From Anaeramoeba ignava BMAN (taxonomy: Eukaryota > Protista > Anaeramoebae), in NCBI GenBank assembly GCA_028826165.1, contig JAPDFW010000016.1:1-64000 (forward strand): a stretch of DNA of 64,000 nucleotides, written 5' to 3'. The stretch's first letter is position 1; every line of letters starts with the position of its first letter. Made by a program: the position numbers and the translations under genes. A model generated the notes under the pieces. It saw only the letters and a program-made list of their open reading frames with translations. It did not search any database and had not been told where the DNA came from. Below are positions 9,796 through 64,000 of this stretch, piece by piece.

Positions 9796-10299
9796 TTTTT
9801 GCTTTTTTTTTTTAATAAAAATAAAAATAAGTAAAATTAATAAATAAAATTTTGTATTTTTTGTGTTTTTTGTGTTACTTTTATAAAGGATGTAGAATGA
9901 AAGAAAAAAAACAAACAAAAAAAATGAGAAAAATGATCTTTTCTTAGTTTTTTAAATTAAGTAAAATTTTTTTTTTTTTGCTTTTTTTTTTAATCCATTT
10001 TTTTTAATTAATTTTTAATTTTAATTTCAGAAATGGAATTTAATTGTAATTTTAATTTTATTTTTATTGTTGTTTTTATTGTTTAAATTTTAATTATGAA
10101 TAAAAAAAAATAAAAATTAGTAATATTTTTTTTTTTTAATTAATTTTAAATAATGCCCACAAAAACAAAAAAAATAAAAAAAAAAATAAAAAAAAAAATA
10201 AAAATAAAAAATTTTTTTTTAAAATTAAAAAATTAAATTTTCATTTTTTCTTTTCAAAAAACAAAAAACAAAGAAAAAAACGAAAATAGAAAGAATAAA

Positions 10300-11989: not shown

Positions 11990-14900
11990 TCATTTTAAAT
12001 TGGAATTAAATTCATCTTCTAAAAAAGGAATTTTGGAAAAACAAAATTCTAATTCATCAAGTTCAGTTATTAAATCAATTTTATTCAACCAAATATTACT
12101 TTTTTTCTTTTTTTGTTGAGTTAATTTAATCATTCCACTTCCTTCTAATTTATCAAGAAGTTCAATAAAACTTTGTCTTGATATTGAATCAATTTTTTTC
12201 AATTTGCAAAAAGAAATATAATAATTTCTTAAAATATTAACGTTCAAATTATGTTCTACTTTTTTGGGTTTTTTTGTTTTCTTTCGATTTGAATCAAAAG
12301 GAATTTGTTCTGATTGGAAAATTAAATTTGGATTTTTTGAAAGCAGAACAATTGAAGCAAGAACAATTTTCTGTTGCAAAGGAAGTGAATCAATCAAATT
12401 GGATTTTTTTGGATCAACCAATTGATTTATCATTGCGAACATGACTTGAAAAGTGACACAATTCAATTTTTGTTTTATAGCATAATTGGCACATTCACGA
12501 CAAAGATCAAATGCCTTTCGGATATCACCAGTTGTTTTGGATATTTTTCGTGAACACAATTCAATTGCTTGAGGATGGAAAACTTCTTCATAATTTTCAA
12601 TCGGAGAAATTCTCTGTTTGATCAATAAAGAAAGTTGGTCAATTGAATAAGTTGTAAAATTCAAAGTGAGTGGATTTGCTCCTCTTTCAAACAAAATGGG
12701 CAGGAGTTTATCTGTGAATTCAAGGTTATTTGCAATTCCCAAAAGGATAAAACTTTTCGAGTTTTTTTGTGAAGCGCAATCAAATAATTGATAAAGAAGT
12801 TCTTGATGATCTCTGAATTGGGAAAGAGTATCAATTTCATCAAGAATCAAAATGGTGATTTTTCTGGGAGTTAAAGTTGTCAATTTTTGGAATTTCATCT
12901 GCAAATATCGCATTTCATCTTCAAAATCCATATTTTCATCATCAGTTGAATAGAAAATTTCTGTTTCTTCTTGTTGTAAAATGGTGTTATTTTGTAACCG
13001 AAGATCTTTGAATATTTTCTGATAAAATGATCTTGGATCCGAAATTTGCATACAATTCATTTCAACTATTTGGAGTTTCTTATCGTATTTTTTAGGGTTT
13101 TTATTTGTTTTTTGGATGAATTTTTGGATTGATTTTTGGACAGTGTATGATTTTCCAGTTCCAGGAAGTCCTGATATAAACAGACTAAGATTTTTGATTT
13201 TCTTTTTCTTGGATTTTTGGGATAAACGAATGTAACTTTTTTTGAGGAAATTTGTTATTGTTTTTTCTTCTTCTTCTCTACATAAAAGGTTTGGAACTTG
13301 AGTTGAGTTATTGAAAGATTTTTTGATTTGGATTAATTTTTGGGAGATTTTTTTGTTTGGAATTTTTTCTGTCTTTTTTTTTTTTTATTAATAAAATTAA
13401 TTTAAATATTAATATAAATATTAATATAAATATTTTGAATATTGATTTGAATTTAAATATTAATTTAAATATTAATTTAAATATTTAATTTAAATATTAA
13501 TTTAAATATTAATTTAAATATTTAATTTAAATATTAATTTAAATATTAATTTAAATATTTAATTTAAATATTAATTTAAATATTAATTTAAATATTTAAT
13601 TTAAATATTAATTTAAATATTAATTTAAATATTAATTTAAATATTTTGAATATTGATTTGAATTTAAATATTAATTTAAATATTTATTTATATATTGATT
13701 TAAATATTTGATTTATATATTAATTTAAATATTAATTTAAATGTTTGATTTTAAATATTAATTTAAATATTAATTTAAATATTAATTTAAATATTGATTT
13801 AAATATTTATTTAAATATTAATATAAATATTAATTTAAATATTAATTTAAATATTTGATTTAAATATTGATTTAAATATTGATTTTAAATATTAATTTAA
13901 ATATTGATTTTAAATATTAATTTAAATATTGATTTAAATATTTGATTTTAAATATTAATTTAAATATTAATTTGGATATTAATTTAAATATTTGATTTAA
14001 ATATTAATTTAAATATTAATTTAAATATTGATTTAAATATTAATTTAAATATTGATTTAAATATTAATTTAAATATTAATTTTAAATATTAATTTAAATA
14101 TTAATTTAAATATTAATTTAAATAATAATTTAAATAATAATTTAAATATTAATTTAAATATTAATTTAAATATTGATTTAAATATTAATTTAAATATTAA
14201 TTTGAATATTAATTTAAATATTTGATTTAAATATTGATTTAAATATTGATTTAAATATTAATTTAAATATTGATTTAAATATTGATTTAAATATTAATTT
14301 AAATATTAATTTTAAATATTAATTTAAAATATTAATTTAAATATTGATTTAAAATATTGATTTTTAAATATTGATTTAAATATTAATTTAAATATTGATT
14401 TAAATATTGATTTAAATATTAATTTAAATATTAATTTAAATATTAATTTAAATATTGATTTAAATATTAATTTAAATATTAATTTAAATATTGATTTAAA
14501 TATTAATTTAAATATTAATTTTGAATATTAATTTAAATATTTGATTTAAATATTGATTTTAAATATTGATTTAAATATTAATTTAAATATTTGATTTAAA
14601 TATTAATTTAAATATTGATTTTAAATATTGATTTAAATATTAATATAAATATTAATTTAAATATTAATTTAAATATTAATTTAAATATTGATTTAAATAT
14701 TATATATTGATTTTAAATATTAATTTAAATATTAATTTAAATATTGATTTAAATATTGATTTATATATTGATTTAAATATTAATATAAATATTAAGTATT
14801 AATTTAAATATTAATTTATATATTAATTTATATATTGATTTAAATATTGATTTAAATATTTAATTTAAATATTGATTTAAATATTAATTTAAATATTAAT

Positions 14901-15221: not shown

Positions 15222-16742
15222 ATGTCAAAAGAATTTTCAAATATTCAAAAATTATCACAAGATTTACAAAAATTATACTTTTCAAAAGAAGAAGAAATAT
15301 ACAGTGATTTTGAAATATATTGCAAAACAAACGAAAAAACACATAAATTCAAATGCCACAAAGCAATTCTTTCATCACGAAGCCAATATTTCAAATCCTT
15401 AATGCGTTCGCGAATGAAAGAATATCAAGAAAGCAAAATCACATTTGAAGACATTTCAAAAGAAAATTTAAACACAATTATCCAATATTTTTACACTGGA
15501 AAATGTTTAATCACTTCAGAAAACGCAATTGAAATTTTGTTGTTCTCTTTAAAATATTTGATTGAGGAATTAATTGACTTTACAGTCAATTTTGTCAAGA
15601 AAAATTGCCAAGTTGAAAATGTTGTTGATATTCTTAAAATCGCTCAATCTTTAAATGTCACACAATTACTTGATTTTTGCTACCAATTTATTTGTTCTAA
15701 TTTTTCTCAAATTGTCGCTACTCCAATGTTATTTAAACTCAATAAGGATAATTTATTGCGAATACTATCAAGGGATTATGTCAATATTTCCGAATTCGAA
15801 ATTTTTCAGGCTCTCATTTCATGGGGAAATCATGCTTATCCTTATAAAAATCAAAACGAAAATTTTGTTGCAGATAAAAATCTTGAAATTCGCAATAAAT
15901 TATCCCATTTATTTTGCAAATTACGTTTTATTGATTTCACAGATGAAGAATTGGATAAAGCTTTCAAAACAGATTTAATTGATAAAGAAATTGAAAAGGA
16001 TTTTCTTCAATTCAAATCGCTTTATTCACTGAAAAAGGAAAGCCCAAATAAACTGGAAAATTTTCAAGAAGAATTGGAAAAAAAAGGGTTTTTGATCCAT
16101 AAATCACGATTTTTCTTTAAATCATCAATTTTATCGCAATCAAACCAATTCCACACTCTAAAGCAGTGGATGGAAGACGATATTTTCTTCAAATCAATGA
16201 AATTGGGGTTTCTGGCTTCAAAAGATGGATTTTCAAGTGAAACTTTCCATTCAAAATGTGATGGAAAAGGAAAAACATTAGTTTTGATTGAAACAACAAA
16301 CGGATATATTTTGGGTGGATATTCAAGCACAGGATGGAATATTCAGAAATCAAATCCAAGAAAAGATCCAAAATCTTTTTTGTTCTCATTTAAAAATTCA
16401 TTTGATACTCAACCTCTAAAATTTGACGTTATTGATCCTGATTCAGCAATTTATTCCTTTATTGATGATGGCCCGAATTGGGGCGCTCCTGATTTGAAAT
16501 TGAGACACAATATGCAAAAATTGTGGATCAATCTTGGTATTCGTTTTTCTTGTCCTTCTTTTGTTGACCAATCAAAAACTTTGGAATTTTTAGTTGGTAA
16601 TGATAATGAAAAAGTTAAAGAAATTGAGATTTTTTTTAATGATTCAGATCCTGTTTTAAATGAAAATGAAAATGAAAATGAAAATGAAAATGAAAATGAA
16701 AATGAACATGAACATGAAAATGAAAAAGATGATTTTTGGTAA
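15222..16742 (+). CDS. BTB/POZ-BACK-TLDc domain protein
   Basis: YSDFEIYC..FKCHKAILSSRSQYFKSLM (BTB); ISEFEIFQALISW (BACK); ASKDGFSSETFHSKCDGKGKTLVLIET..ILGGYS..W..DPKSFLFS (TLDc). Confidence 0.9.
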   Translation: MSKEFSNIQKLSQDLQKLYFSKEEEIYSDFEIYCKTNEKTHKFKCHKAILSSRSQYFKSLMRSRMKEYQESKITFEDISKENLNTIIQYFYTGKCLITSENAIEILLFSLKYLIEELIDFTVNFVKKNCQVENVVDILKIAQSLNVTQLLDFCYQFICSNFSQIVATPMLFKLNKDNLLRILSRDYVNISEFEIFQALISWGNHAYPYKNQNENFVADKNLEIRNKLSHLFCKLRFIDFTDEELDKAFKTDLIDKEIEKDFLQFKSLYSLKKESPNKLENFQEELEKKGFLIHKSRFFFKSSILSQSNQFHTLKQWMEDDIFFKSMKLGFLASKDGFSSETFHSKCDGKGKTLVLIETTNGYILGGYSSTGWNIQKSNPRKDPKSFLFSFKNSFDTQPLKFDVIDPDSAIYSFIDDGPNWGAPDLKLRHNMQKLWINLGIRFSCPSFVDQSKTLEFLVGNDNEKVKEIEIFFNDSDPVLNENENENENENENENEHEHENEKDDFW

Positions 16743-17577: not shown

Positions 17578-20500
17578 ATGAACATTTGGAAAATTATTGA
17601 ACAAAACAATTTTCAATTATTAAAACAAATCAAAACAATTCAAGAAAAGGATTTACAAAAAAATAAAAAATTCCTTTTAAATTTTGCAATAGAAAAAAAA
17701 GTGTCAAAAGAAATTATTGAATTTTTAATTGAAAAAGGTTTAAAACCAAATTTAGTTGATGGTTCACTTAGAAACTCATTACATATCGCACTTTTAAATA
17801 ATTCTAAATTGGAAATTATTGAGTATTTGATTTCAAAAGGAATTGATATTAATTTTAAAGCAAAAAACGATCAAACAGCTTTACATTTTGCTTGTGAAAA
17901 TAATTCACTTGAGGTTATTAAATTATTAATTGAAAAAGGAATTGATATTTATGCAAAAACAAATCAAAATGAAACAGCTTTACATTTTGCTTGCAAAAAT
18001 AATTCACTTGAAATTATTAAATTATTAATTGAAAAAGGAATTGATATTTATGCAAAAACCAAAAAAAATCAAACAGCTTTACATTTTGCTTGTGAAAATA
18101 ATTCACTTGAAGTTATTAAATTATTAATTGAAAAAGGAATTGATATTTATTCAAAAACCAATGAAAATCAAACAGCTTTACATTTTGCTTGCAAAAATAA
18201 TTCAATTGAGGTTATTGAGTATTTGATTTCAAAAGGAATTGATATTTATGCAAAAACAAATCAAAATCAAACAGCTTTACATTTTGCTTGTGAAAATAAT
18301 TCACTTGAGGTTGTTAAATTATTAATTGAAAAAGGAATTGATATCAATTCAAAAACAAATGAAAATGAAACAGCTTTACATTTTGCTTGCAAAAATCAAA
18401 ATAATTCATTTGAAATTGTTAAATATTTGATTTCAAAGGGGATTTTTATTAACGAAAAGATGAAAAATAAAGTAATTCTCCATTATATTTGCAAAAAAAA
18501 TCAAAATTTAACAGTTGATGAAATTGAGTATTTCATTTCAAAAGGAATTGATATCAATTCAAAAACAAATGAAAATGAAACAATTTTGCATTTCGCTTGT
18601 AAAAATCAAAACATCTCTTATGAAATTATTAAATATTTGATTGAAAAAGGTGTTGATTTAAATGCGAAAACAGAAAATAATGAAACAGCTTTGCATTTTG
18701 CTTGCAAAAATCAAAATATTTCTTATGAAATTATTAAATTATTGATTGAAAAAGGAATTGATATCAATTCAAAAACAAATCAAAATGAAACAGCTTTGCA
18801 TTTTGCTTGTAAACAAGACAATCCATCATTGGAAATTATTCAATATTTGATTGAAAAAGGTGTTGATTTAAATGCGAAAACAGAAAATAATGAAACAGCT
18901 TTACATTTTGCTTGCAAAAATAAAAACATTTCTTATGAAATTATTAAATATTTGATTGAAAAAGGAATTGATATCAATACAAAAACATTCCAAAATGAAA
19001 CAATTTTGCATTTTGCTTGTAAAAATCAAAATATCTCTTATAAAATTATTCAATATTTGATTGAAAAAGGTGATTTAAATGCAAAAACAGAAAATAATGA
19101 AACAGCTTTACATTTTGCTTGCAAAAATAAAAATATTTCTTATGAAATTATTAAATATTTAATTGAAAAAGGAATTGATATCAATACAAAAACATTCCAA
19201 AATGAAACAGTTTTGCATTTTGCTTGTAAACAAGACAATCCATCATTGGAAATTATTCAATATTTAGTTGAAAAAGGAGCTGATTTACATATAAAAACAA
19301 AATATCACAATGAAACACTTTTGCATTTAGTTTGCCAACAAACTAATTCATCACTTGAAGTTATTAAATATTTGGTATCAAAAGGGATTTACATTAACGC
19401 AAAAATAAACTTCCAAAATGAAACAGCTTTGCATTTTGCTTGTAAACAAAAAAATCCATCTTTTGAAGTGATCCAAGTTCTAGTTGAAAAAGGGATTGAT
19501 ATTAATGCAAAAACAATTTATAACGAAACACCTTTTCATTTTATTTGTGGAAATAAGAATTCATCAATTGATATTATTTATTATCTTTTTGAAAAGGGAG
19601 CTGATATTCATGCAATCACAAAACGAAAACAAACAGCTTTGCATCTTGCTTGTGAAAATCAATCATTTGAAGTTATTCAATTTTTGATTGAAAAAGGAAT
19701 TGATGTTAATGCAAAAATTGTTTATCAAAACAAGACAGCTTTACATTTAATCTGTAAGCAAGATCACCCACCATTGAAAATTATCCAGTTTATGGTTGAA
19801 AAAGGAATTGATGTTAATACAAAAACACCTTATCAAAATGAAACAGCTTTGCATTTTGTTTGTGGACAAGAAAATCCATCATTGGAAGTTATTCAATATT
19901 TTTTGGAAAAAGGAGTTGATATAAATGCAAAAACACAAAAGAATTACACTTTTTTACATTTGATTTGCAACAAAGATAATCCATCATTTGAAACTATTCA
20001 ATATTTAATTGAAAAAGGGATTGAAATTAATGCACAAACAAATAGCAACGAAACAATTTTGCATTTGATTTGTAAACAAGATAATCCATCATTTCAAATT
20101 ATTCAATATTTAGTTGAAAAAGGAATTGATATTAATACAAAAACAGATCAAAATGAAACAGTTTTGCATTTGATTTGTAAACAAGATAATCCATCATTTG
20201 AAATTATTAAATATTTAATTGAAAAAGGAATTGATGTTAATACAAAAACAAATCAAAGTGAAACAGCTTTGCATTTTATTTGTAAAAAAGATAATCCATC
20301 ATTTAAAATTATTAAATATTTAATTGAAAAGGGAGTTGATATTAATTCAAAAGCATTCCAAAGTGAAACATTTTTACAATTGATTTGCAGAAAAGATAAT
20401 CCATCATTTAAAATTATCCAATATTTAGTTGAAAAAGGAATTGATGTTAATGCAAAAACAAATTATAGAAAGGAAACAGCTTTGCATTTAATCTGTCAAA

Positions 20501-22668
20501 AAGATAATTCATCCTTTGAAATTATTAAATATCTTATTGAAAAAGGAATTGATTTGCAAGCAAAAACAAAAAGAAAAGAAACAGCTTTGCATTTTATTTG
20601 CAAAGAAGATAATTCATCGTTTAATGGTATTGAATATTTGATTTCAAAAGGGATAGATATCAATTCAAAAACAAATGAAAATTATACACCTTTGCATTAT
20701 GCTTGTATCCATCAATCCTTTGAAACTATTAAGTATTTAATCGGAAAAGGAGCAGATGTTAATGCAAAAACAAATCGAAATGAAACAGCTTTGCATTTTA
20801 TTTGTGGAAAAAGACACGTATCATTTGAAATTACCAAATTTCTAGTTGAAAAAGGAGTTGATCTCAATGTGAAATCATCATACGAAAACGAAACAGCATT
20901 ACATTTAGTTTGTCAATCTATTGATCCTCCTTTTGAAATTATTAGATATTTGATTGAAAAAGGAAGTGATATTCACCCAATAACAGAAGAGAATGAAAAT
21001 ATTCTACATCTTATTTGTCAACAAAGCACGATATCAGTCCAAATTATTGAATATATCATTTCAAAGGGAATTGATATTCATGCAAAAACAAGTCAAAATG
21101 AAACAGCTTTACATTTTGTTTTTTGGAAAAGAAATGCACAAATTGATATTGTCAAATACTTAATTTCAAAGGGAATTGATATTAATTCAAAATCAAAGGA
21201 CCAAGAAACGTTTTTACACATTATCTGCAAACAAGATGATCCTTCTTTTGAAATGATCAAATATCTTGTTGAAAACGGAATTGATATCAATGCAAAGACA
21301 AATAAAAATGAAACAGCTTTACATTTTATTTCTGCAAAGAGAAATTCAAATTCTTTTGAAATTATCAAATATTTGGTTGAAAAAGGAATTGATGTTCATG
21401 CAAGAACTAAAGAAAACGAAACAGTTCTGCATTTTGTTTGCAAACAAGATAATCCACCAATTAGAGTTATCAAATATCTTGTTGAAAACGGAATTGATAT
21501 CAATGCAAGGACAAATAAAAATGAAACAGTATTACATTTTGCTTGCCAACAAAATTTATCATTTGAGATTATCGAATATCTAGTTGAAAAGGGGGTTGAT
21601 ATCAATTCAAAAACAAATCGAAATCAAACCGCTTTACATTTTGCTTGTATACACGAATCGTTTAAAGCGATTGATTTCCTCATTTCAAAAGGAATTGATA
21701 TGAATATAAAAACAAATGAAAATCAATCAGCTTTGAATCTTTCTTGCTACTATCAGAATCAAAGCTCAATAAAAGCATTATTGTTTCATAATGCGACTAT
21801 TTTTGATCTAAATAAGCGAGATTTCTCTTCAAAAATTGTTGAATGTTTTTCTCAAGTTTATTCCATTAACGAAGATCTCAGCAATTTATTAAAATTGAAT
21901 GAAAATTTTTTTGATTACCAAATTGAGTCAAATGATCACTTCAGATTTAATGTTCACAAACTGATTTTACTATCACGATTTGACAGTAGTGATTCATATT
22001 TCAACAAATTTGTTCAAATTTGTTCACAAAAACCAAAAGATCAAGTTGAAATTGCTTTGAATTTTCTTTATACCGGATTTACTAATTTTGAGAAACTTTC
22101 TAGAAAATTGAAAGAACAAGAAAAATTGCTTGAAAACTATATATCTTTTTTATATAATACAACGAAAAAAAACTTAGATTGGGATGAAGAAGACAAAGAA
22201 AAAGAGGAAAACATAATTGAAGAAATTTTCACAGAAGTTTTCAGAGGAATTTCCACAGAAACTTCCACAAATTTTGGATTTGTGTCTAAATGGATTGAGA
22301 ATAAAAGAGGAAGGAGAGGGATATTAAAAGATTTTGAACAATTATATCATCAAGAATCGACAAAGGATTTTACGATAATTATTGAAGAAAACGGGAAAGA
22401 AAGAGAAATCCAAGTTCATAAATTGGTATTAATAACAAGAAGTGAGTTATTTAAAGGAATGTTTTTAAATGTTCGAGATTCTTCAAATAAGGTTCATGAT
22501 TATTCAGGGAAATCATTTGAAACTTTAGATTATTTTATTTATTTTCTTTATCATGATTCATTTGAAGAAGAAACAAAACGAGTTTATCCAAAAATTATTG
22601 AAGAATTTGAATATTTAAAGGATTTTTATCAATTAAATGAAAATTCGACGATTGATTTTGGTTTTTAA
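17578..22668 (+). CDS. Large ankyrin-repeat protein (roughly 40 repeats) with C-terminal tandem BTB-like domains
   Basis: Repeated ETALHFAC..SFEIIKYLIEKGIDINAKT units; C-terminal FDYQI..FNVHKLILLSR and KDFTIII..IQVHKLVLITRSELFKGMF. Confidence 0.92.
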   Translation: MNIWKIIEQNNFQLLKQIKTIQEKDLQKNKKFLLNFAIEKKVSKEIIEFLIEKGLKPNLVDGSLRNSLHIALLNNSKLEIIEYLISKGIDINFKAKNDQTALHFACENNSLEVIKLLIEKGIDIYAKTNQNETALHFACKNNSLEIIKLLIEKGIDIYAKTKKNQTALHFACENNSLEVIKLLIEKGIDIYSKTNENQTALHFACKNNSIEVIEYLISKGIDIYAKTNQNQTALHFACENNSLEVVKLLIEKGIDINSKTNENETALHFACKNQNNSFEIVKYLISKGIFINEKMKNKVILHYICKKNQNLTVDEIEYFISKGIDINSKTNENETILHFACKNQNISYEIIKYLIEKGVDLNAKTENNETALHFACKNQNISYEIIKLLIEKGIDINSKTNQNETALHFACKQDNPSLEIIQYLIEKGVDLNAKTENNETALHFACKNKNISYEIIKYLIEKGIDINTKTFQNETILHFACKNQNISYKIIQYLIEKGDLNAKTENNETALHFACKNKNISYEIIKYLIEKGIDINTKTFQNETVLHFACKQDNPSLEIIQYLVEKGADLHIKTKYHNETLLHLVCQQTNSSLEVIKYLVSKGIYINAKINFQNETALHFACKQKNPSFEVIQVLVEKGIDINAKTIYNETPFHFICGNKNSSIDIIYYLFEKGADIHAITKRKQTALHLACENQSFEVIQFLIEKGIDVNAKIVYQNKTALHLICKQDHPPLKIIQFMVEKGIDVNTKTPYQNETALHFVCGQENPSLEVIQYFLEKGVDINAKTQKNYTFLHLICNKDNPSFETIQYLIEKGIEINAQTNSNETILHLICKQDNPSFQIIQYLVEKGIDINTKTDQNETVLHLICKQDNPSFEIIKYLIEKGIDVNTKTNQSETALHFICKKDNPSFKIIKYLIEKGVDINSKAFQSETFLQLICRKDNPSFKIIQYLVEKGIDVNAKTNYRKETALHLICQKDNSSFEIIKYLIEKGIDLQAKTKRKETALHFICKEDNSSFNGIEYLISKGIDINSKTNENYTPLHYACIHQSFETIKYLIGKGADVNAKTNRNETALHFICGKRHVSFEITKFLVEKGVDLNVKSSYENETALHLVCQSIDPPFEIIRYLIEKGSDIHPITEENENILHLICQQSTISVQIIEYIISKGIDIHAKTSQNETALHFVFWKRNAQIDIVKYLISKGIDINSKSKDQETFLHIICKQDDPSFEMIKYLVENGIDINAKTNKNETALHFISAKRNSNSFEIIKYLVEKGIDVHARTKENETVLHFVCKQDNPPIRVIKYLVENGIDINARTNKNETVLHFACQQNLSFEIIEYLVEKGVDINSKTNRNQTALHFACIHESFKAIDFLISKGIDMNIKTNENQSALNLSCYYQNQSSIKALLFHNATIFDLNKRDFSSKIVECFSQVYSINEDLSNLLKLNENFFDYQIESNDHFRFNVHKLILLSRFDSSDSYFNKFVQICSQKPKDQVEIALNFLYTGFTNFEKLSRKLKEQEKLLENYISFLYNTTKKNLDWDEEDKEKEENIIEEIFTEVFRGISTETSTNFGFVSKWIENKRGRRGILKDFEQLYHQESTKDFTIIIEENGKEREIQVHKLVLITRSELFKGMFLNVRDSSNKVHDYSGKSFETLDYFIYFLYHDSFEEETKRVYPKIIEEFEYLKDFYQLNENSTIDFGF

Positions 22669-49994: not shown

Positions 49995-51280
49995 AAATAA
50001 ATAAATATAAATCTAAATATAAATATAAATCTAAATATAAATCTAAATCTAAATTTAAATATAAATATAAATATAAATATAAATATAAATATAAATATAA
50101 ATATAAATATAAATATAAATATAATTATAAATATAAATATAAATATAAATATAAATATAAATATAAATATAAATATAAATATAAATATAAATATAAATAT
50201 AAATATAAATATAAATATAAATATAAATATAAATCTAAATCTAAATCTAAATATAAATCTAAATATAAATATAAATATAAATATAAATATAAATCTAAAT
50301 ATAAATATAAATATAAATCTAAATATAAATCTAAATCTAAATCTAAATATAAATATAAATATAAATCTAAATCTAAATCTAAATCTAAATCTAAATCTAA
50401 ATCTAAATCTAAATCTAAATATAAATCTAAATATAAATCTAAATCTAAATCTAAATCTAAATATAAATATAAATATAAATCTAAATATAAATATAAATAT
50501 AAATCTAAATCTAAATCTAAATCTAAATCTAAATCTAAATATAAATATAAATATAAATCTAAATATAAATATAAATATAAATCTAAATCTAAATCTAAAT
50601 ATAAATATAAATCTAAATCTAAATCTAAATCTAAATCTAAATATAAATATATATATAAATATAAATATAAATCTAAATCTAAATATAAATATAAATATAA
50701 ATATAAATATAAATATAAATCTAAATCTAAATCTAAATCTAAATCTAAATCTAAATATATATATAAATATAAATATAAATATAAATATAAATATAAATCT
50801 AAATATAAATATAAATATAAATCTAAATATAAATATAAATATAAATATAAATATAAATATAAATCTAAATCTAAATCTAAATCTAAATCTAAATCTAAAT
50901 CTAAATATATATATAAATATAAATATAAATCTAAATCTAAATATAAATCTAAATCTAAATATAAATATAAATATAAATCTAAATATAAATCTAAATATAA
51001 ATATAAATATAAATATAAATATTAATCTAAATCTAAATATAAATATAAATCTAAATATAAATATAAATATAAATATAAATATAAATATAAATATAAATAT
51101 AAATATAAATATAAATATAAATATAAATCTAAATATAAATATAAATATAAATATAAATATAAATATAAATATAAATATAAATATAAATATAAATATAAAT
51201 ATAAATATAAATATAAATATAAATCTAAATCCAAATCCAAATCTAAATCTAAATATAAATATAAATATAAATCTAAAATG
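49995..51280. repeat. (TAAATA/TAAATC)n hexamer microsatellite
   Basis: Almost indel-free two-variant hexamer array. Confidence 0.93.
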
Positions 51281-53514: not shown

Positions 53515-55080
53515 ACAATAAATTTGTTTATAAATTTTATTATAAATTTTATTATAAATTTGTTTATAAATATGTTTATAAATTTCTTTCATTTTTTGTT
53601 TATAAATTTGTTAATAAATTTGTTTATAAATTTCCTTCATTTTGTGTTTATAAATTTGTTTATAAATTTGTTTATAAATTTGTTTATAAATTTTATTATA
53701 ATTTTGTTAATAAATTTGTTTATAAATTTGTTTATAAATTTGTTTATAAATTTGTTTATAAATTTGTTTATAAATTTGTTTATAAATTTTATTATAATTT
53801 TGTTTATAAATTTGTTTATAAATTTGTTTATAAATTTTATTATAAATTTGTTTATAAATTTGTTTATAAATTTGTTTATAAATTTCCTTCATTTTGTTTA
53901 TAAATTTGTTTATAAATTTGTTTATAAATTTGTTTATAAATTTGTTTATAAATTTGTTTATAAATTTGTTTATAAATTTGTTTATAAATTTGTTTATAAA
54001 TTTGTTTATAAATTTGTTTATAAATTTGTTTATAAATTTGTTTATAAATTTGTTTATAAATTTGTTTATAAATTTGTTTATAAATTTGTTTATAAATTTG
54101 TTTATAAATTTGTTTATAAATTTGTTTATAAATTTGTTTATAAATTTGTTTATAAATTTGTTTATAAATTTGTTTATAAATTTGTTTATAAATTTGTTTA
54201 TAAATTTGTTTATAAATTTGTTTATAAATTTGTTTATAAATTTGTTTATAAATTTGTTTATAAATTTGTTTATAAATTTGTTTCATTTTGTGTTTATAAA
54301 TTTGTTTATAAATTTGGTTATAAATTTGTTAATAAATTTCCTTCATTTTGTGTTAATAAATTTCCTTCATTTTATGTTTATAAATTTGTTTATAAATTTG
54401 TTTCATTTGTGGTTATAAATTTCCTTCATTTTATGTTTATAAATTTGTTTATAAATTTGTTTATAAATTTGTTTATAAATTTGTTAATAAATTTGTTTAT
54501 AAATTTGTTTATAAATTTGTTTATAAATTTGTTAATAAATTTGTTAATAAATTTGTTTCTAAATTTGTTTATAAATTTGTTTATAAATTTGTTTATAAAT
54601 TTGTTTCATTTTGTGTTTATAAATTTGTTTATAAATTTGTTTCTAAATTTGTTTATAAATTTGTTTATAAATTTGTTTATAAATTTGTTTCATTTTGTGT
54701 TTATAAATTTCTTTCATTTTTTGTTAATAAATTTGTTTATAAATTTCCTTCATTTTTTGTTAATAAATTTGTTAATAAATATGTTTATAAATTTGTTTAT
54801 AAATTTGTTTATAAATTTCTTATTTTTTCTTAATAAATTTCCTTCATTTTATGTTAATAAATTTGTTTATAAATTTGTTAATAAATTTCCTTCATTATAT
54901 GTTTATAAATTTGTTTATAAATTTGTTTCATTTTGTGTTTATAAATTTCTTTCATTTTATGTTTATAAATTTGTTTATAAATTTGTTTCATTTTGTGTTT
55001 ATAAATTTGTTTATAAATTTGTTTATAAATTTCTTTCATTTTTTCTTAATAAATTTGTTAATAAATGTGTTTATAAATGT
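53515..55080. repeat. 12-bp minisatellite (TTTGTTTATAAA)n
   Basis: Perfect core at about 53895-54280 with degenerate flanks; lies between divergent genes. Confidence 0.93.
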
Positions 55081-55171: not shown

Positions 55172-58100
55172 ATGAAAAATATTCAAAAAGAAAAAATTCT
55201 AATAGAATACAAACCAAAACAAATTCCTCGATTAGCTTCAATGCTAAGAGTGTTTCTGCACAACAAAAAAGAAGAAACAAATGAAAATCAAGAAAAAAAC
55301 GAAGATGAAAAAAAAACAATTGGATTTGATTATGAAAACGAACAGACAAAAAGAACAAAAAGATTCCAACAGAAAAAAAGCATTGAAGAAACAGTGCGGT
55401 TTAAAACCAACGCAGTTGAGCTGAAATGGAGCACTTTTTCACGCGAAATCAATGAATCAGAAACTCAAGGAATTCGAAAACAATTCAATAATTTTTTGGA
55501 ATTAATTTCTAAAATAACGCAAGTAAAAACTCAGGAAGGACTGCATAAAACTGCATACCAAGTTTACCAAACGTTGGTTCGTTTGGATCTCTCAAAAAAA
55601 GAAAAACTCGAAACCCTTATAATTGGATTTGGAAATGAATGGCAGGAAAAAGTTAATTTTTTCGATTTATTTGATTTGGCTCAATTTTTAACAAATTGGA
55701 GAATAAAAGCAATCGATGATTCTAATAGAAATGGAGGCTTTGTTTCTCATTCTTTTCTTCCCAAAAAACAACCTCCGCAAAAAAGTACTTATCTTATTGA
55801 AAAACAAAGAGAACGTGATAAAAGAGAACATCAAGAATCAAAAATTAAAGAAAAAAAACAAAAGCAAGAAAAACAAAAAGAAGAACAAGATAAAATCCAA
55901 AAAAAAGAAAGAAAGGAAAAGAAAAAACAAAGGAAACTCGATAGAAAGCAAAAGAAAATAAGCAAAGAAATTGATGAGGAAAAAGAAATGGAAAATAAGA
56001 AAAGAAACAAAAACAATAAGAAATGGAATTTTAAAAAAGATCAAAATCAAAATCAAGATCAAAATCAAAATCAAAATCAAGATAATTTAACTGATACTGA
56101 AGATAATGAAAATATTAATGAAGATGATCAAAATATTAATGAGAATGATGAAAAACCAAAAGAAAAACCTAAAAAACCCAAAAAACACAAAAGAAAAATT
56201 GAGGAAGAAATACCAGAAGTAAAACCCCATTTCCATCAAGAATTTGGAATGGGATTCATTTTTTCAGACTTAAATTCCTATCTTGAAAATGTGAATCTTG
56301 AAGAAGAACGAAAAAAAATCAAAGAATTGCAAGACGAAATCAATCTTCACACTCCCAAAATCAAGGAGCTCAAATTCTCAAAAGCAATTCTTTGGCTCAA
56401 GCAGAATTTATATCAATCTTTTCCAGATAATGAGAGCAACACTGATATTATACTTTCTGTTTGCAAATTGATATGTTCAAAATCAACAAATGAACAAATT
56501 CAAAATGAAATTTTCGATCTTATTGGCGATTTTGATTTAACACAGATTATCATCCATAATAGAGCAAAATTTATTCGGGAATCGATTCATCTCGATTTAC
56601 TTCGTAATCCTTCAGTCATTTTGGATGAAAATTTTCTTGAGGATGAATTCAAATTCGTCAAATCATCCGGAATTATAAAAACAAAACAAGACCAAGAATT
56701 ACTTAAATTTGCCTCAAAATTAGAGAAAAAGGAGCAAATGACAAAAAATCAAAAGAAATCAAAACGCCAAAAATTGCAACAACAAATTGAAGAATTATAT
56801 GGGAATCAACCGCTTCAAATGGAAAGTCCAGTTATTGTTAAAAAACTTGGGAAACGAACAAAAAAACGGAAACCAAAACAAACAAAATCAGTTCGAGAAA
56901 CTGCAAAATGGGTTTCTGATCTATCTCAATATTTACAGAGTTTAGGTTATTCTCAACTTAACAAAGCCGTTACTCTTCCTAAAGGAACAATTCGTAGGAG
57001 TACTGATCAATATGATAATGTTTCTATTCCTGCTCCTAAAATTAAACCTATTCCAAAAGATCGTTTAGTTCCTATTAAAAAATTTGATAAGTGGGCTCGC
57101 CCTGCTTTTGAAGGTTTTACTCATCTTAATGTTATTCAAACAGAAGTTTTTGAAACTGCTTATAATACAAATGAGAATCTTTTAATTTGTGCACCAACTG
57201 GAGCAGGTTAATCCAAAAAATATATAAAAATATTTAAATTCAAAAAAATATTTAAATTCAAAAAAATATTTAAATTCAAAAAATATTTAAATTCAAAACA
57301 ATATTTAAATTCAAAAAATATTTAAATTCAAAAAATATTTAAATTCAAAAAAATATTTAAATTCAAAAAATATTTAAATTCAAAAAAATATTTAAATTCA
57401 AAAAAATTTATATTTATATTTATATTTATATTTATAAAATTCAAAACAATATTTAAATTTAAAAAATATTTAAATTCAAAACAATATTTAATTAAAAAAT
57501 ATTTATATTCAAAAAAATATTTAAATTCAAAAAATATTTAATTAAAAAATATTTAAATTCAAAAAAATATTTAAATTCAAAACAATATTTAATTAAAAAA
57601 TATTTAAATTTAAAAAATATTTAAATTCAAAACAATATTTAAATTCAAAACAATATTTAAATTTAAAAAATATTTAAATTCAAAAAAATTTAAATTCAAA
57701 AATATTTAAATTCAAAACAATATTTAAATTCAAAAAAATATTTAAATTCAAAACAATATTTAAATTTAAAAAAATATTTATATTTATATTTATATTTATA
57801 TTTTAAATATTTAGGAAAAAGTCTCCCTAATAACGCAATAGTTTATACTCCAAAAGGCCCAAAAAGAAATGGTGATCTAAAACCAAATGATTTTGTTTGC
57901 ACTCCTGATGGCAAAATATCCAAAATTTTACAAATATTTCCTCAAGGAATTTTAAACATATACCAAATAACTTTCCAAGATGGTGATAAAGTAGAATGCA
58001 GTGGAGATCATTTATGGTTTATAAATGATAAAGCAAAATCAACTTCGAATATTTACACAACAAAACAAATCATACAAAGACTTAAAGAAACTAACTCTCA

Positions 58101-61100
58101 AATAACAATTAATACTCCTAATCCCTTGAAATTTCAACACAAATCATGCAAAATACACCCATATTTAATGGCCATTTTATTCAACTCAAAATTGTTTTAT
58201 AATAAAAACACTTTTAAACTTTATTTTAATTACTCAAGTGGTGATCCATTTATTGACAATAAAGTTTTTCTTCATCTTCAAATCCTTATGAAATATCAAA
58301 ATTGCAAACTTCAAAAACAAACTTCAAATGATTGGATATTATCTTCTTCTTTGGAATCTATTCACCAAAATTCAAATTTTCTGAATATGATTGATTATCT
58401 TTTTGAAATTGGATTTTTAGAGAAAGAAATTAAAAATAGAAACATTCCTGATGAATATATTTTCAATACAAAAATAATAAGAAAACAATTTCTTCAAGCA
58501 ATTTTGGATCAAAATGGCAAATTCTTCAACCAAAATCAACTTGGATTTTATTCTCTTTCAAAACACTTTGCAAATCAAATTAAACCCATAATTCTATCAT
58601 TAGGAGGATTATTAAACATCACAAAAGAACCAAGAGATGAATCAGGTTTAGGAGATTTATTCAAATGTATTATTGAAGGAATTGATGCTAAAATATTACT
58701 TCATTTCAGAGAAAATTTGAATGGAAAAAATGCAAAATTCGAAAAATGCGAAAGAGTTATCAAGAAAATCAAGAAAATAAGAAAAGACGAATGCACATGT
58801 ATTCTTATCGATCATCCCGAGCATTTATATCTAACAAACAATTTTGTGGTTACACACAATACAAACATTGCATTAATGGCAATTTTGCATGAGATTAAAA
58901 ACCATTTAATAAGCCCAAATATCTTGAATATTCTGAAAACAAAGGAATTCAAAATTATATACATTGCACCAATGAAAGCGCTTGCATCAGAACAAGTCTC
59001 AAATTTTTCAAAACGTCTCGAGTATTTAAAGTTCAAAGTAAAAGAACTGACTGGAGATATGCAACTAACAAAAAAAGAAATTGAAGAAACACAAATGATT
59101 ATAACAACACCCGAAAAATGGGATGTAACAACTCGCAAAACTGGAGGAATATCAATCACAGACATTGTAACCTTGATAATTATTGATGAAATCCATCTAC
59201 TTAATGATGATAGAGGATCTGTGATTGAAAGTTTAGTTGCGAGAATCATGAGAAAAATTGAGATGTCTCAAAGAATGATCCGAATTGTTGGTCTTTCAGC
59301 AACATTACCAAATTATCAAGATGTTGCAGAATTTTTAAGAGTGAATGAAAGAGGTTTATTTCATTTTGATTATACTTACAGACCCATTCCTTTATCTCAA
59401 GATTTTTATGGATTTCGAGGTGAAAACCAATCTTATGTTACAAATCTCATGAATAAAAAGGCTTTTGAATTAATAACACAAGTTCTTCAAGACGATTTAC
59501 AAGCATTAATTTTTGTGACAAGTAGAAACGAAACAGTCAATTTAGGTTTACAATTTATGAGAATGGTAGAAAAACAAGGATTAGTAACACTTTTTCAACC
59601 AAAGAGAACAGAATCTTTTCGAATAATCCAAAAAAATGTTGAAAAATCATCAAATTCTGAATTGAAAAAATTATTTAATTTTTGTAAATAATTATTTAAA
59701 AATTATTTAATATTTATTTAATATTTATTTAATAATTATTTAAAAATTATTTAATATTTATTTAATATTTATTTAATATTTATTTAATATTTATTTAATA
59801 TTTATTTAATATTTATTTAATATTTATTTAATATTTATTTAATATTTATTTAATAATTATTTAATATTTATTTAATATTTATTTAATATTTATTTAATAA
59901 TATTTATTTAATATTTATTTAATATTTATTTAATATTTATTTAATAATTATTTATTTAATATTTATTTAATATTTATTTAATATTTAATATTTATTTAAT
60001 ATTAAATTTACATTTTTAAAGCTATCGGCATTCATCATGCAGGAATGCTTCGCTCAGATAGAAATTTAATGGAAAAACTATTTAAAAGTGGTCACATTAA
60101 GGTTTTAATATCAACAGCAACATTATCATGGGGTGTTAATCTTCCATCACATACAGTTATTATAAAAGGAACCCAAATTTATAAAGATGGTAACTTTGTA
60201 GAATATGATCAGCTCAATATTGCACAAATGTGCTTCACAGCAAATACAAAAGTATTGCTTAGTAATGGAAAATGGGAAACAATTAGTGATATTGTTAATC
60301 TTGGAATTGGTGAATCAGTTTTATCTTTTTGCAAGAAAACAGGTCAATTAGTTCCAAAAAAAATAGTGAATAGATATAAAAATGGAAAAAGAAAAGTTTG
60401 CAGTTTTGTCTTTAAAAACAAAAATGAAATTTCTTGCACAAAAGATCATAAAATACTTTCATCAATCGATTCCAAAAACGGGAAAAAATTCAAATGGATC
60501 AAAATTGGGGAATTATTAATAAAACAAAAGGAGGAGGAAGGAAAACAAACAGAATTCTCAGCAATATCATTAGCAAAAACAATGAAAAAAGCAAATTTAA
60601 CATCAACAAAAATAGAAAAAGCAAATTTAATTTCAAAAGAAAAAAAACGAATTGAATTTGTTTATGATCTTGAAATTGAAGACACACATAATTACATTGT
60701 AAACGAAAACTTGTGTCTGATTGCTCACAATTGCGGAAGAGCTGGACGTCCTCAATACGACACTTCTGGACACAGCATTATTCTAACAACCCATGACCAA
60801 ATTGATAGATATGTTAATATGGTGATTCATAAAAAGCCTATTGAGAGTCGGTTCCAAGAAAATTTGCCCGACAATCTCAACGCAGAAGTAATATTAGGCA
60901 CAGTAACAGATGTTAGAGAAGCCTCTATATGGTTGCAATACAGCTATTTAATGGTTCGAGCATTGAAAGCACCATCAAATTATGGGATCGGTTGGGAAGA
61001 AAAAGTCAACGATCCAACTCTCAGTGAATTCCGAAGAAATATCATCACACAAACAGCAAAAATCCTAACCGAAGCAAAAATAATCCGCTATGATGAAATT

Positions 61101-64000
61101 TCGGAGACTTTATCCCCAACAGATTTGGGAAGAGTTGCTAGTCATTATTATATTAAATACCAAACAATCAAAATGTTTAATGAAAAACTAAAAAGTACAA
61201 TGAATGATGACAAAGTCTTTGAAATGGTCAGTCTTTCTTCGGAATTCGAAAGACTGAAAGTAAGAGAGGAAGAGATCCCCGAATTGGAAGAGTTAGCAGA
61301 AACAACATGCCCAATCAAAGTTATTGGCGGATGCGAACAATCTTATGGGAAAGCAAATATTCTATTGCAATCTTATATTTCACGAACAAGATTGAATACA
61401 TTTTCGTTAATTTCAGATCAGAACTATGTTTCCCAAAACGCAGTAAGAATCCTTCGCGCTGCGTTTGAAATTAGTCTCAACAAAGGATGGAGTTCAACAG
61501 CTTTAAGAGTACTCACAATTTACAAAATGGTTGAAAGAAAAATATGGAACTTTCAAAATTCACTGATGCAAATTGAAGGCATTTCGCCGGGAATTATCAA
61601 AAAATTGGATCGGAATAATTTAACAATTGACAAACTAAGTGATATGGATGCTGGCGAGATTGGATATCTTTTGCGCAGTCCAGCTTTAGGTCACAGCATT
61701 AAGCAAAAAATTGAATATTTTCCAGTTATTGATATGGATATTGAAGTTCAGCCAATTACGCGTTCAGTTTTAAGACTAAAACTTAATATTCATCCTCTAT
61801 TTCAATGGAACGGAGGAATTCATGGCGATTCTCAACCCTGGTGGATTTGGGTTGAAGATTTTAATTCAGAGCATATTTATCATTCAGAGTTATTTATTTT
61901 AACTCGAAAAAATCTTAATCAAGAACATAATATCACTTTTACTATCCCTATTTTTGATCCTTTACCTCCTCAATATTATGTCCGCATTGCTTCGGATTTC
62001 TTTGTTGGTGCTGAACAAATTTTCCCTGTTTCTTTTAAGCATTTAATTCTTCCTGAACATTATATTCCTCATACAGAATTACTTAATTTGATACCTCTTC
62101 CTATTGATGCTTTAAAAAATGAAAAATATCAAAGTTTATTTTCATTTACTCATTTTAATCCAATTCAAACACAAGTATTTTTTACTTTATATCATACAAA
62201 TGTAAGTATTTTTAAAGTATTTTTAAAATATTTATTTATAAAATTTATTTAAAATATTTATTATAAAATTTATTTAAAATATTTATTTAAAATATTTATT
62301 TAATAATATTTATTTATTAATATTTATTTAAAATATTTATTTAAAATATTTATTTATAATATTTATTTAATAATATTTATTTAAAATATTTATTTAATAA
62401 TATTTATATAATATTTATTTAAAATATTTATTTATTAATATTTATTAAAATATTTATTTATTAATATTTATTTATAATATTTAATCTTGATTTAAAAAGA
62501 AAAATGTTTTATTGGGAGCTCCAACTGGTTCTGGAAAAACAATTGCAGCTGAAATTGCTATATTTAGAGTATTCAATGAATATCCAAATAAAAAAACAAT
62601 TTATATTGCACCATTAAAAGCACTTGTTAGAGAAAGAATGAAAGATTGGAAAGAAAGATTTGTTAAGAAACTTGGGAAATCAGTTGTTGAATTAACAGGA
62701 GATGTTATGCCAGATAGAATGGCTTTGAAAAAAGCTGATGTTGTTGTTTCTACTCCTGAAAAATGGGATGGTATTAGTAGAAGTTGGAAATCAAGAAGTT
62801 ATGTTAAAGATGTTGCTTTGATTGTTATTGATGAAATTCATCTTCTTGGTTCTGATCGTGGTCCTATTTTGGAAATGATTGTTTCTCGAATGAGGTAATT
62901 AGAAAATGAATTTAAAATTTAGAAATAAATTTAAAATTTAGAAATCAATTTATAATTTAAAAATAAATTTAAATTTAAAATGAATTTAAAAATCAATTTA
63001 AAATTTAGAAATAAATTTATAATTTAAAATTTAGAAATCAATTTAAAATTTAGAAATGAATTTAAAATTTAAAAATAAATTTATAATTTAAAAATCAATT
63101 TAAAATTTAAAAATGAATTTAAAAATAAATTTATAATTTAAAATTTAAAAATCAATTTAAAATTTATAATTTAAAAATCAATTTAAAATTTATAATTAAA
63201 AAATAATTAAAAATAAATTTATAATTTAAAATCACAAAGATATATCGCAAGCCAAACAAACTCAGAATCTAGATTTATAGGATTATCAACAGCGTTGGCA
63301 AATGCCGCAGATATTGCACAATGGTTAGATGTTGACAGCTCAGGAATGTTTAATTTTAGGCCATCAGTTCGACCAGTTCCATTAGAAACTCACATTCAAG
63401 GATTCTCAGGAAAACATTACTGTCCAAGAATGGATACAATGAATAAACCTGCTTATCAATCAATAAAACTTCACTCATCATCAAAACCAACCTTGATTTT
63501 TGTTTCTTCAAGAAGACAAACAAGATTAACTGCATTTGCTTTAATTTCTTTAAGTGTTGCAAATCTTACTCCAAATGAATTCCAAAGAATGACTGAGGAG
63601 GAAATGAATGTAATTTTGCCAAAAATCAGAGATAAAAATTTAAAGCATACTTTGGAATTTGGTATCGGTTTGCATCACGGAGGTTTATCTACATCTGATC
63701 GTAAAATTGTTGAAAATTTGTTTGCAAAGGAAAAAATTCAATTGTTAGTTTCAACAAGTACTCTTGCTTGGGGTATAAATTTACCAGCACATCTTGTTGT
63801 AATCAAAGGAACTGAGTTTTATGATGCAAAAACTAGAAAATATGTTGATTTCCCAATCACAGATGTGCTTCAAATGTGTGTTGATGAAAATTCACCTATT
63901 TTAATCAAATCCCAAAATGGATCTTTATTTAAAAAGGCAAAAAATTTGAATTTGGGTGATTTTGTTTGTGGAATTGATTACAATAACAAGATTAATTGTG
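55172..64000 (+). CDS. ASCC3: ASCC3/Slh1 Ski2-like tandem-cassette helicase precursor with three inteins (3' partial); exons 55172-57206, 57815-59683, 60022-62201, 62500-62894, 63240->64000
   Basis: After removing introns and inteins: [12 protein letters not shown]|[50 protein letters not shown]|[10 protein letters not shown], Sec63 region, second cassette [46 protein letters not shown]. These intact second-cassette motifs favour ASCC3/Slh1 over Brr2. Confidence 0.93.
57207..57814 (+). repeat. ASCC3 intron 1, ~18-19-bp ATATTTAAATTCAAAAA(A) repeats
   Basis: GTTAAT donor at 57207, TTTAG acceptor at 57814, phase 1 within the last Gly codon of APTGAG. Confidence 0.88.
57820..58860 (+). mobile_element. 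Intein 1 (347 aa, Ser1...His-Asn/Thr+1) in Walker A of cassette 1; class-3 W-C-T signature; degenerate LAGLIDADG endonuclease
   Basis: GK|[55 protein letters not shown] ... [24 protein letters not shown]|TNIALMAIL. Removal restores APTGAGKT. Confidence 0.93.
59684..60021 (+). repeat. ASCC3 intron 2, (TATTTATTTAA)n
   Basis: GTAAAT..AAG; the join gives [13 protein letters not shown]. Confidence 0.85.
60231..60731 (+). mobile_element. Intein 2 (167-aa class 1 mini-intein, Cys1...His-Asn/Cys+1) in motif VI of cassette 1
   Basis: AQM|[57 protein letters not shown]|[10 protein letters not shown]. Confidence 0.95.
63877..64000 (+). mobile_element. Intein 3 (N-terminal part only) in motif VI of cassette 2
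   Basis: [10 protein letters not shown]|[32 protein letters not shown]: block A and N2 pattern (C1..K.LxxGDxV) where xGRAGRP should follow; truncated by the window end. Confidence 0.85.

Follow-up and report, generated by a model that had tools for sequence, protein, structure and literature searches.

A gene model with five introns and three inteins for the ASCC3/Slh1-type helicase of Anaeramoeba ignava BMAN

Introduction

Can a helicase gene encode an intact enzyme when three of its catalytic motifs are interrupted by in-frame inserts, and are these inserts inteins? This question is raised by a locus at the end of the window, i.e., the stretch of 64,000 nucleotides (nt) of DNA from the protist Anaeramoeba ignava BMAN that was analysed here. 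In the original prediction, made from the sequence of the window, the gene had been described as an ASCC3/Slh1 helicase with at least three inteins and four spliceosomal introns. Human ASCC3 and yeast Slh1 are ribosome-quality-control and alkylation-repair helicases. All coordinates given below without a contig name refer to A. ignava BMAN contig C18 (JAPDFW010000016.1), and the numbering of contig and window is equal up to position 64000. The contig has a length of 80.8 kb, the window is its first 64 kb, and the 3' part of the gene was read from the following 10 kb.

A three-intein ASCC3 gene is already known since 2023, and it has been partly validated experimentally. The assembly of A. ignava BMAN comprises 42,843,398 bases in 147 contigs with a GC content of 19.35% (PMC11550330, Table S1), and the A+T content of the window is 80.0%, compared with 80.65% for the published genome. 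According to the main text of Gallot-Lavallee et al. (PNAS 2023, PMC10710043), the strain has 103 inteins, and three inteins were predicted in the protein ASC1S3 (gene model g14419.t1). Added here are the exact coordinates, an intron-exon model and the residue-level colinearity with human ASCC3.

Results

Gene Model and Introns

The boundaries of exons and inserts were set from the sequence, using the list of open reading frames (ORFs) and three-frame translations. The latter revealed helicase segments in differing frames, which were set apart by stretches of nearly pure A+T. The gene spans positions 55172-66470 on the + strand and thus runs beyond the end of the window at 64000. It has the following parts (a slash within a motif marks an insertion junction):

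55172-57206, + strand: exon 1, Lys/Glu-rich N-terminal region followed by the start of cassette 1, ending with ...LLICAPTGA and the initial base of a codon for Gly
57207-57814, + strand: intron 1, GT...AG, phase 1, 608 nt, 94% A+T, tandem repeats
57815-59683, + strand: exon 2, begins with five bases, holds intein 1 and continues with RecA-1 of cassette 1
57815-57819, + strand: the five bases of exon 2, GA and AAA, which complete the Gly and encode the Lys of Walker A (GAGK)
57820-58860, + strand: intein 1, 347 amino acids (aa), APTGAGK/SLPNN...VVTHN/TNIA, in Walker A (GK/T) of cassette 1
58861-59683, + strand: remainder of exon 2, RecA-1 of cassette 1 (TNIALMAIL..., DEIH box), Pfam DEAD with an E value of 6.5e-22
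59684-60021, + strand: intron 2, GT...AG, phase 1, 338 nt, 99% A+T, tandem array of 11 nt
60022-62201, + strand: exon 3, contains intein 2
60022-60230, + strand: first part of exon 3, RecA-2 of cassette 1 as far as motif VI (...NIAQM), Pfam Helicase_C
60231-60731, + strand: intein 2, mini-intein of 167 aa, IAQM/CFTAN...LIAHN/CGRAGRP, in motif VI of cassette 1
60732-62201, + strand: remainder of exon 3, cassette 1 with CGRAGRP, wHTH and Sec63, then the beginning of cassette 2, Pfam Sec63 (2e-90) and SNRNP200_wHTH
62202-62499, + strand: intron 3, GTAAGT...AG, phase 0, 298 nt, 98% A+T, tandem array of 13 nt
62500-62894, + strand: exon 4, RecA-1 of cassette 2 with an uninterrupted Walker A (GAPTGSGKT), Pfam DEAD 8.7e-29
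62895-63239, + strand: intron 4, GT...AG, phase 2, 345 nt, 94% A+T, tandem array of 19 nt
63240-65184, + strand: exon 5, contains intein 3
63240-63876, + strand: first part of exon 5, cassette 2 as far as motif VI (...DVLQM), Pfam Helicase_C
63877-64989, + strand: intein 3, 371 aa, VLQM/CVDEN...IVTHN/CGRAGRP, in motif VI of cassette 2
65185-65264, + strand: intron 5, GT at the start and AG at the end, beyond the window
65265-66470, + strand: exon 6, second Sec63, stop at 66470

The exons add up to 9630 nt, i.e., 3209 codons and a stop codon, and the sum is an exact multiple of three. Neither stops nor frameshifts were found across these 9.6 kb of coding sequence. All five introns have GT...AG ends, and their removal restores the reading frame as well as the colinearity with orthologues. 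The frame shift between exons 1 and 2 is resolved only by the splice of intron 1, which splits the Gly codon of Walker A and ends 5 nt upstream of intein 1. The A+T content of introns 1 to 4 is 94-99%, compared with 70% for the exons. Four spliceosomal introns had been given in the original prediction; the total for the gene is five, with the fifth situated past the window end.

The Host Protein

Database searches were run separately for each exon or extein piece, and total lengths were obtained by coordinate arithmetic. In a search of solved structures, human ASCC3 (chain 8alz_B) was the top match for six of the seven extein pieces, followed by yeast Slh1 or Brr2. The N-terminal piece scored slightly better on Brr2 than on ASCC3. 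A Pfam scan placed DEAD, Helicase_C, wHTH and Sec63 domains in both cassettes, as is typical of the ASCC3/Slh1 subfamily, and found no family on the N-terminal part of exon 1. Homologues named ASCC3 reached 51% identity, and none exceeded it, when an extein piece of 490 aa was used for a protein database search. The genome contains a single gene of the ASCC3 type; the paralogues on contigs C56 and C77 are more distant. These results support the assignment of the locus, from its sequence, as the single ASCC3/Slh1 orthologue of A. ignava BMAN, and the ASCC3/Slh1 identity that had been proposed for the gene was borne out.

An alignment with ASCC3/Slh1 orthologues had been suggested as a check of the gene model, and the exteins were indeed colinear with human ASCC3 over every junction after inserts and introns had been removed. 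The last 98 residues of exon 1 align to Brr2 and ASCC3 chains, with the match on 8alz_B ending at residue 107, and the piece after intein 1 covers residues 110-379 (E value 1e-117). Residues 108-109 (G108 and K109) are the only ones missing between these two pieces, and they correspond to the split Gly codon and the Lys codon. The first part of exon 3 aligns to residues 384-452 and adds the Met at 453; the piece after intein 2 begins with the Cys at 454 and continues over residues 455-946 (4e-199). Exon 4 covers residues 948-1076 and the first part of exon 5 residues 1079-1290 (1e-124). The piece after intein 3 starts with the Cys at 1291, followed by residues 1292-1354, and exon 6 covers residues 1356-1581. 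Thus, the alignment is continuous across the intron junctions (379/384, 946/948, 1076/1079 and 1354/1356), and the pieces that flank the inserts abut at 107/(108-109)/110, 453/454 and 1290/1291.

The Three Inserts Have the Features of Inteins

The three inserts of 347, 167 and 371 aa are all in frame, and their positions agree with the proposed insertion sites, i.e., Walker A (GK/T) and motif VI in cassette 1 and motif VI in cassette 2. For intein 3, the first 41 of the 371 aa lie inside the window (63877-64000) and the remainder beyond it. All three start with Cys or Ser, have a His in block B and end with His-Asn, which is followed by Cys, Ser or Thr at position +1. Each of them could be assigned to the Hint family by profile, by relatives or by a match of a model to solved structures. 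The scores with the Pfam profile PF14890 (Intein_splicing) were 53.2 bits for intein 2, 35.3 bits for intein 3 and 24 bits for intein 1, at a cut-off of 35.8 bits. The profile check that had been proposed thus gave a value above the cut-off for intein 2, a value 0.5 bit below it for intein 3, and a lower value for intein 1, which was rescued by its relatives and its structural model. No fourth intein was seen in the N-terminal region, in Walker A of cassette 2 or in the last exon, and "at least three" inteins can be narrowed down to exactly three.

The residue that follows inteins 2 and 3 is informative as well. None of 80 intein-free homologues has a Cys at this position of motif VI; they have QIF, QML or QMM before GRAGR. 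According to the sequence comparison, the Cys that follows inteins 2 and 3 does not represent the ancestral state.

It was considered whether the inserts might be removed at the RNA level as unusual introns and never be translated. What speaks for this is that their retention in the mRNA was deduced rather than observed. The inserts are regarded as something other than introns because they have long stop-free frames, because they start with AGT, TGC and TGT instead of GT, and because their composition is exon-like (73% A+T, compared with 94-99% for introns 1 to 4). At 73% A+T, the chance of a stop-free frame is 5e-14 for 347 codons, 4e-7 for 167 codons and 6e-15 for 371 codons. In addition, Hint and LAGLIDADG signatures were found in the inserts, and their catalytic residues are conserved. 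The inserts are also part of the published protein model, and one of them was spliced as a protein, according to the main text of PMC10710043. The intron explanation was rejected, and we regard it as virtually excluded.

A contamination with prokaryotic or viral DNA was also rejected; the inserts are flanked by exons of eukaryotic type, the introns have GT-AG ends, and the contig is 80.8 kb long.

Intein 1 Carries the WCT Triplet of Class 3 Inteins

The key residues of intein 1 are Ser1, the block B residues S61-x-x-H64-x-W66, C327 in block F, the C-terminal T345-H346-N347 and a Thr at +1. The E value with the Pfam Intein_splicing profile was 3.8e-5, which is under the cut-off. An exhaustive HMMER search retrieved 10,514 relatives, mostly full length, and 6,269 of them had an E value of at most 1e-10. 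Among the best 134 relatives with both ends mapped, 112 are inserted after GK and 98 start with Ala; all 134 end with THN, which is followed by Thr or Ser in 131 cases. In a representative-sequence search for intein 1 relatives, the A. ignava protein itself was not listed. H64, W66, C327, T345, H346 and N347 belong to nine positions that are invariant in an alignment of 48 sequences.

The WCT triplet defines class 3 inteins, most of which reside in P-loops of ATPases (PMC2807308). Intein 1 has all three residues, i.e., Trp at B:12 (W66), Cys at F:4 (C327) and Thr at G:5 (T345), and it also has the P-loop insertion and the Thr at +1 (GAGK/.../T). The non-nucleophilic N-terminal residue of class 3 was not found; intein 1 and its SL-type paralogues in A. 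ignava start with Ser. Among 37 WCT inteins listed in PMC2807308, three have Ser1 or Cys1, and the class of these three had been left open. Intein 1 was not assigned to class 3 in the strict sense because Ser1 could start a class 1 reaction. Its residues suggest that it most likely uses the class 3 route, and a class 1 start is possible with Ser1.

An AlphaFold model of intein 1, based on the 48-sequence alignment, had a predicted local distance difference test (pLDDT) value of 92.7. The best folds for this model were the TliVMA intein, PI-SceI and PI-PfuI (E value 3e-15, template modelling (TM) score of 0.6-0.7 on the query), and its splicing-domain part matched class 3 DnaB inteins.

A profile search revealed dozens of Hint matches in the genome. 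Paralogues of intein 1 were found at at least nine A. ignava loci, all of them P-loops of the type GK/S or A...THN/T, and they reside in dyneins, kinesins and DEAH helicases as well as in a Rad51-like and an SNF2-like gene. A second copy of a DEAH-helicase P-loop intein locus was observed on contig C68 (374472-375423), with the flanks IVVGQTGSGK/.../TTQLTQ. The N- and C-terminal portions of this copy match intein 1, yet a straight in-frame read gives 13 stops. The copy is either a decayed duplicate or it is split mid-way by a frame change or an intron.

Inteins 2 and 3 Are of Class 1 and Have Relatives in One Other Helicase

Intein 2 has the key residues Cys1, T70-K-D-H73, VYDLEIE, H166-N167 and a Cys at +1. 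The match to Pfam Intein_splicing had an E value of 3.8e-14, and an endonuclease domain is absent. Intein 3 has Cys1, H70, T369-H370-N371 and likewise a Cys at +1. It matched Intein_splicing with 1.2e-8, and also Hom_end (1.4e-6) and LAGLIDADG_3 (1e-5), both above their cut-offs. By their residues, both are standard class 1 inteins, with Cys1, a His in block B (as TxxH for intein 2 and as MxxH for intein 3), His-Asn and Cys+1.

The only relatives of these two inteins in the genome reside in one gene, which encodes a POLQ/HELQ-like helicase on contig C137 (676259-679001). The first intein of this gene is the relative of intein 2, and the second is the relative of intein 3. The two abut directly, with no extein residue between them, and the protein reads KQM/CFTYS...IIAHN/CIHEE...IATHN/CGRAGRVG. 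It was also observed that the first intein of the C137 gene shifts the reading frame near position 2400 of piece L023 of this contig. Candidate causes are a frameshift, a short intron or an error in the long-read assembly. The frame change is not mentioned in the main text of PMC10710043, which does mention the adjacent inteins.

Endonuclease Domains and Mobility

An active LAGLIDADG enzyme has two motifs, each of which ends in a catalytic Asp or Glu, and this arrangement was found neither in intein 1 nor in intein 3. In intein 1 the motifs read ILFNSK and ILDQNG, compared with LLGDG and MDTDG in the family. The catalytic Asp of both motifs is lost in all six A. ignava P-loop inteins that were aligned, and most relatives of the prokaryote or phage type retain LLGDG and MDTDG. 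The second motif of intein 3 reads IIDSKG, compared with FDAEG in PI-PfuI, with a Lys at the catalytic position. The LAGLIDADG fold is kept in both inteins, as indicated by the model match and by Pfam, respectively. All three ASCC3 inteins now look like immobile selfish passengers, because intein 2 is without an endonuclease domain and inteins 1 and 3 have lost the catalytic acids. Also the P-loop intein family as a whole looks immobilised in the A. ignava genome, judged by these motifs.

The inteins might instead be a conditional, environment-sensing switch on ASCC3, responding for example to redox state or metals. For class 3 DnaB inteins in P-loops, conditional splicing has been documented in mycobacteria, the host of the ASCC3 inteins is an anaerobe, and the published in vitro assay was compared in the presence and absence of TCEP (tris(2-carboxyethyl)phosphine) and with Zn2+ (legend of Fig. 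1 of PMC10710043). The support for a switch thus lies in analogy. The sequence holds nothing that bears on regulation, and in the main text of PMC10710043 the eight insertion sites in common with A. flamelloides do not include ASC1S3. Selfish spread fits better with about 100 inteins in many unrelated proteins. A switch function is judged to be unlikely.

Proposed Maturation of the Helicase

The spliceosome would remove five AT-rich introns from the pre-mRNA, and the mRNA would encode a precursor of 3209 aa. After translation, the three inteins would excise themselves, as has been published for one of them. For inteins 2 and 3 the expected sequence is an N-S acyl shift at Cys1, the transfer of the N-extein onto Cys+1, the cyclisation of Asn and an S-N shift. 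In intein 1, Cys327 of block F would attack the Lys-Ser1 bond, and the N-extein would then be handed to Thr+1. These reactions would restore the two interrupted motifs of cassette 1, Walker A (GAGK-T) and motif VI (QM-CGRAGRP), together with motif VI of cassette 2, and the product would be a tandem Ski2-like helicase of 2324 aa. An intact ATPase site in either cassette would have to be preceded by three protein-splicing reactions.

Some observations weigh against this model. Both the removal of the introns and the retention of the inserts in the mRNA were inferred from the genomic sequence. In a sequencing run of unknown kind the word share was 0.82, which equals the exonic share and is compatible with intron-free RNA, and a DNA run gave 0.83; RNA and DNA are thus not told apart by these word shares. 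Intein 3 has a Met instead of a Thr at position 7 of block B, and the Pfam scores of inteins 1 and 3 are below the curated cut-off, albeit by only 0.5 bit for the latter. The equation with g14419.t1 builds on the identity of the assembly and a matching description. Lastly, splicing has been published for a single intein of the three, and its identity had to be deduced.

Several of these points would also fit with one or more inteins being splicing-dead, in which case the helicase would be dead, the gene would be a pseudogene, or one cassette would be active. In addition to the one of three inteins with published splicing (PMC10710043, main text) and to intein 3 with its block B Met and a score at the cut-off, the combination of Ser1 and WCT in intein 1 is unusual. 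On the other side, the terminal nucleophiles are all retained, as are the His of block B, the C-terminal His-Asn and the Cys at +1, which is not ancestral; the 9.6 kb of coding sequence are free of stops and frameshifts, and the gene is the sole ASCC3 orthologue in the genome. Conservation of the exteins is good; the lowest E value with human ASCC3 was 4e-199. The loss of splicing is thus improbable, even more so than a switch function. Taken together, an ASCC3 orthologue, i.e., g14419.t1, with five introns and three inteins is very probably the best explanation of the locus as a whole.

Relation to the Published Gene

The original prediction had cautioned that the sites may already be catalogued if the host is Anaeramoeba, and three ASCC3 inteins are indeed contained in the main text of PMC10710043. 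There, one ASC1S3 intein, a singleton, was spliced in vitro from a GFP construct; this is most likely intein 2. The "Cluster 1" inteins were described as being all in P-loops and class 3-like. The ASC1S3 inteins b and c, one per helicase cassette, were found to be closest to two adjacent POLQ inteins. This pattern was reproduced here, with P-loop paralogues for intein 1 and with the relatives of inteins 2 and 3 as an abutting pair on C137. The locus was taken as the published gene because the assembly is the same, because it contains a single ASCC3-type gene, and because the intein relationships match, and it is almost certainly g14419.t1.

A second, unreported helicase gene with three inteins would be another way to read the locus, since g14419.t1 was matched by assembly and description and not by accession or sequence. 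The same assembly harbours only one gene of the ASCC3 type, and the intein relationships agree with Fig. 6A of PMC10710043; we consider a second gene to be highly improbable. Two leads lie outside the main text of that publication, namely the dead endonuclease sites of inteins 1 and 3 and the introns that hug P-loop inteins on their upstream side.

Three inteins in catalytic motifs of one essential nuclear helicase are exceptional for a eukaryote. They show that, in a single genome, inteins can settle in the P-loops and motif VI of ATPases that are unrelated to each other, which is already in print for the ASCC3 gene.

Introns Directly Upstream of P-loop Inteins

The short distance between intron 1 and intein 1 has parallels in the genome. 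At four of the nine P-loop intein loci an intron ends 0-36 nt upstream of the first intein codon, in a sample that is small and with a distance window that was picked after the data had been seen:

contig C71, at about 847400: SNF2-like gene, intron at 0 nt, exactly at the junction of N-extein and intein (GLGK/intron/AQPLDA)
57207-57814, + strand: ASCC3 gene, intron 1, located within the codons of Walker A and 5 nt upstream of the intein
contig C126, at about 400660: Rad51-like gene, intron 24 nt upstream of the intein
contig C92 (C92/C35), at about 277630: dynein, intron 36 nt upstream of the intein

Four of nine is more than would be expected from about two introns per gene. That A. ignava P-loop inteins have an intron just upstream more often than by chance, perhaps with a mechanistic link, is put forward very tentatively and is rather doubtful. 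Introns might have been gained during the repair of breaks made by homing endonucleases, or there might have been selection for introns that interrupt the homing site, freezing the element in place. The main text of PMC10710043 deals with introns that lie at unoccupied intein sites of paralogues, and the coexistence of intron and intein at occupied sites may be new.

Repeats and Neighbouring Genes

The introns as well as the spacers between genes are built of short-period tandem arrays that consist of A+T only:

59671-60003: array of intron 2, period 11 nt
62222-62483: array of intron 3, period 13 nt
62903-63231: array of intron 4, period 19 nt
53518-55078 and 50001-51277: intergenic arrays, periods 12 and 6 nt

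In a genome search, the unit family of intron 4 had more than 240 matches with 73-85% identity on many contigs. The array with the period of 12 nt yields spurious ORFs of several hundred codons.

Neighbouring genes in the window were located at the following positions:

4221-9918, - strand
11993-13060, - strand
15222-16739, + strand
17578-22665, + strand
30744-32396, + strand
34154-35662, + strand

The neighbours include two FG-GAP repeat proteins, the C-terminal part of a Cdc6/ORC-like protein and a BTB-BACK-TLDc protein, and also an ankyrin-repeat/BTB protein of 1696 aa, Utp14 and a GT4 glycosyltransferase. No Pfam match was obtained for three further ORFs of 725-827 aa (36468-38948, 41510-43684 and 43922-46255).

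Comparison with Known Systems

The host protein shares with human ASCC3 (8alz_B) and yeast Slh1 (7zpq) the tandem Ski2-like cassettes, each with RecA-1, RecA-2, wHTH and Sec63, and its exteins align continuously to residues 28-1581 of the human protein. In contrast to the A. ignava gene, the ASCC3/Slh1 orthologues are without inteins, and they have F, L or M at the position of the Cys at +1. A further difference is the N-terminal region, which is of low complexity and rich in Lys, Glu and Asn in A. ignava, unlike that of human ASCC3 and yeast Slh1.

Intein 1 resembles the class 3 P-loop inteins, such as those of mycobacteriophage Bethlehem DnaB and M. smegmatis DnaBi1 (PMC2807308, PDB 6bs8), which are also inserted after the GK of Walker A. 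Common features are Trp B:12, Cys F:4, Thr G:5, the His-Asn end and Thr+1, and intein 1 has thousands of full-length sequence relatives. It differs from them by Ser1, which is usually Ala, and by its degenerate endonuclease motifs. Unlike the class 3 DnaB inteins, it resides in a eukaryotic nuclear gene and has an intron in the same motif.

Among solved structures, the model of intein 1 was most similar to PI-SceI of yeast VMA1, the TliVMA intein and PI-PfuI, and PI-PfuI aligns also with the second LAGLIDADG motif of intein 3. These three are active homing enzymes with acidic residues, whereas the same positions are occupied by Ser and Asn in intein 1 and by Lys in intein 3.

The closest known system is ASC1S3 g14419.t1 of BMAN as described in the main text of PMC10710043. 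Strain assembly, host protein and number of inteins are the same. Also in that account one intein is located in a P-loop, and the two others are found one per cassette, with relatives that lie side by side in POLQ. Nothing substantive differs between that description and the locus analysed here, and the two are taken as the same object.

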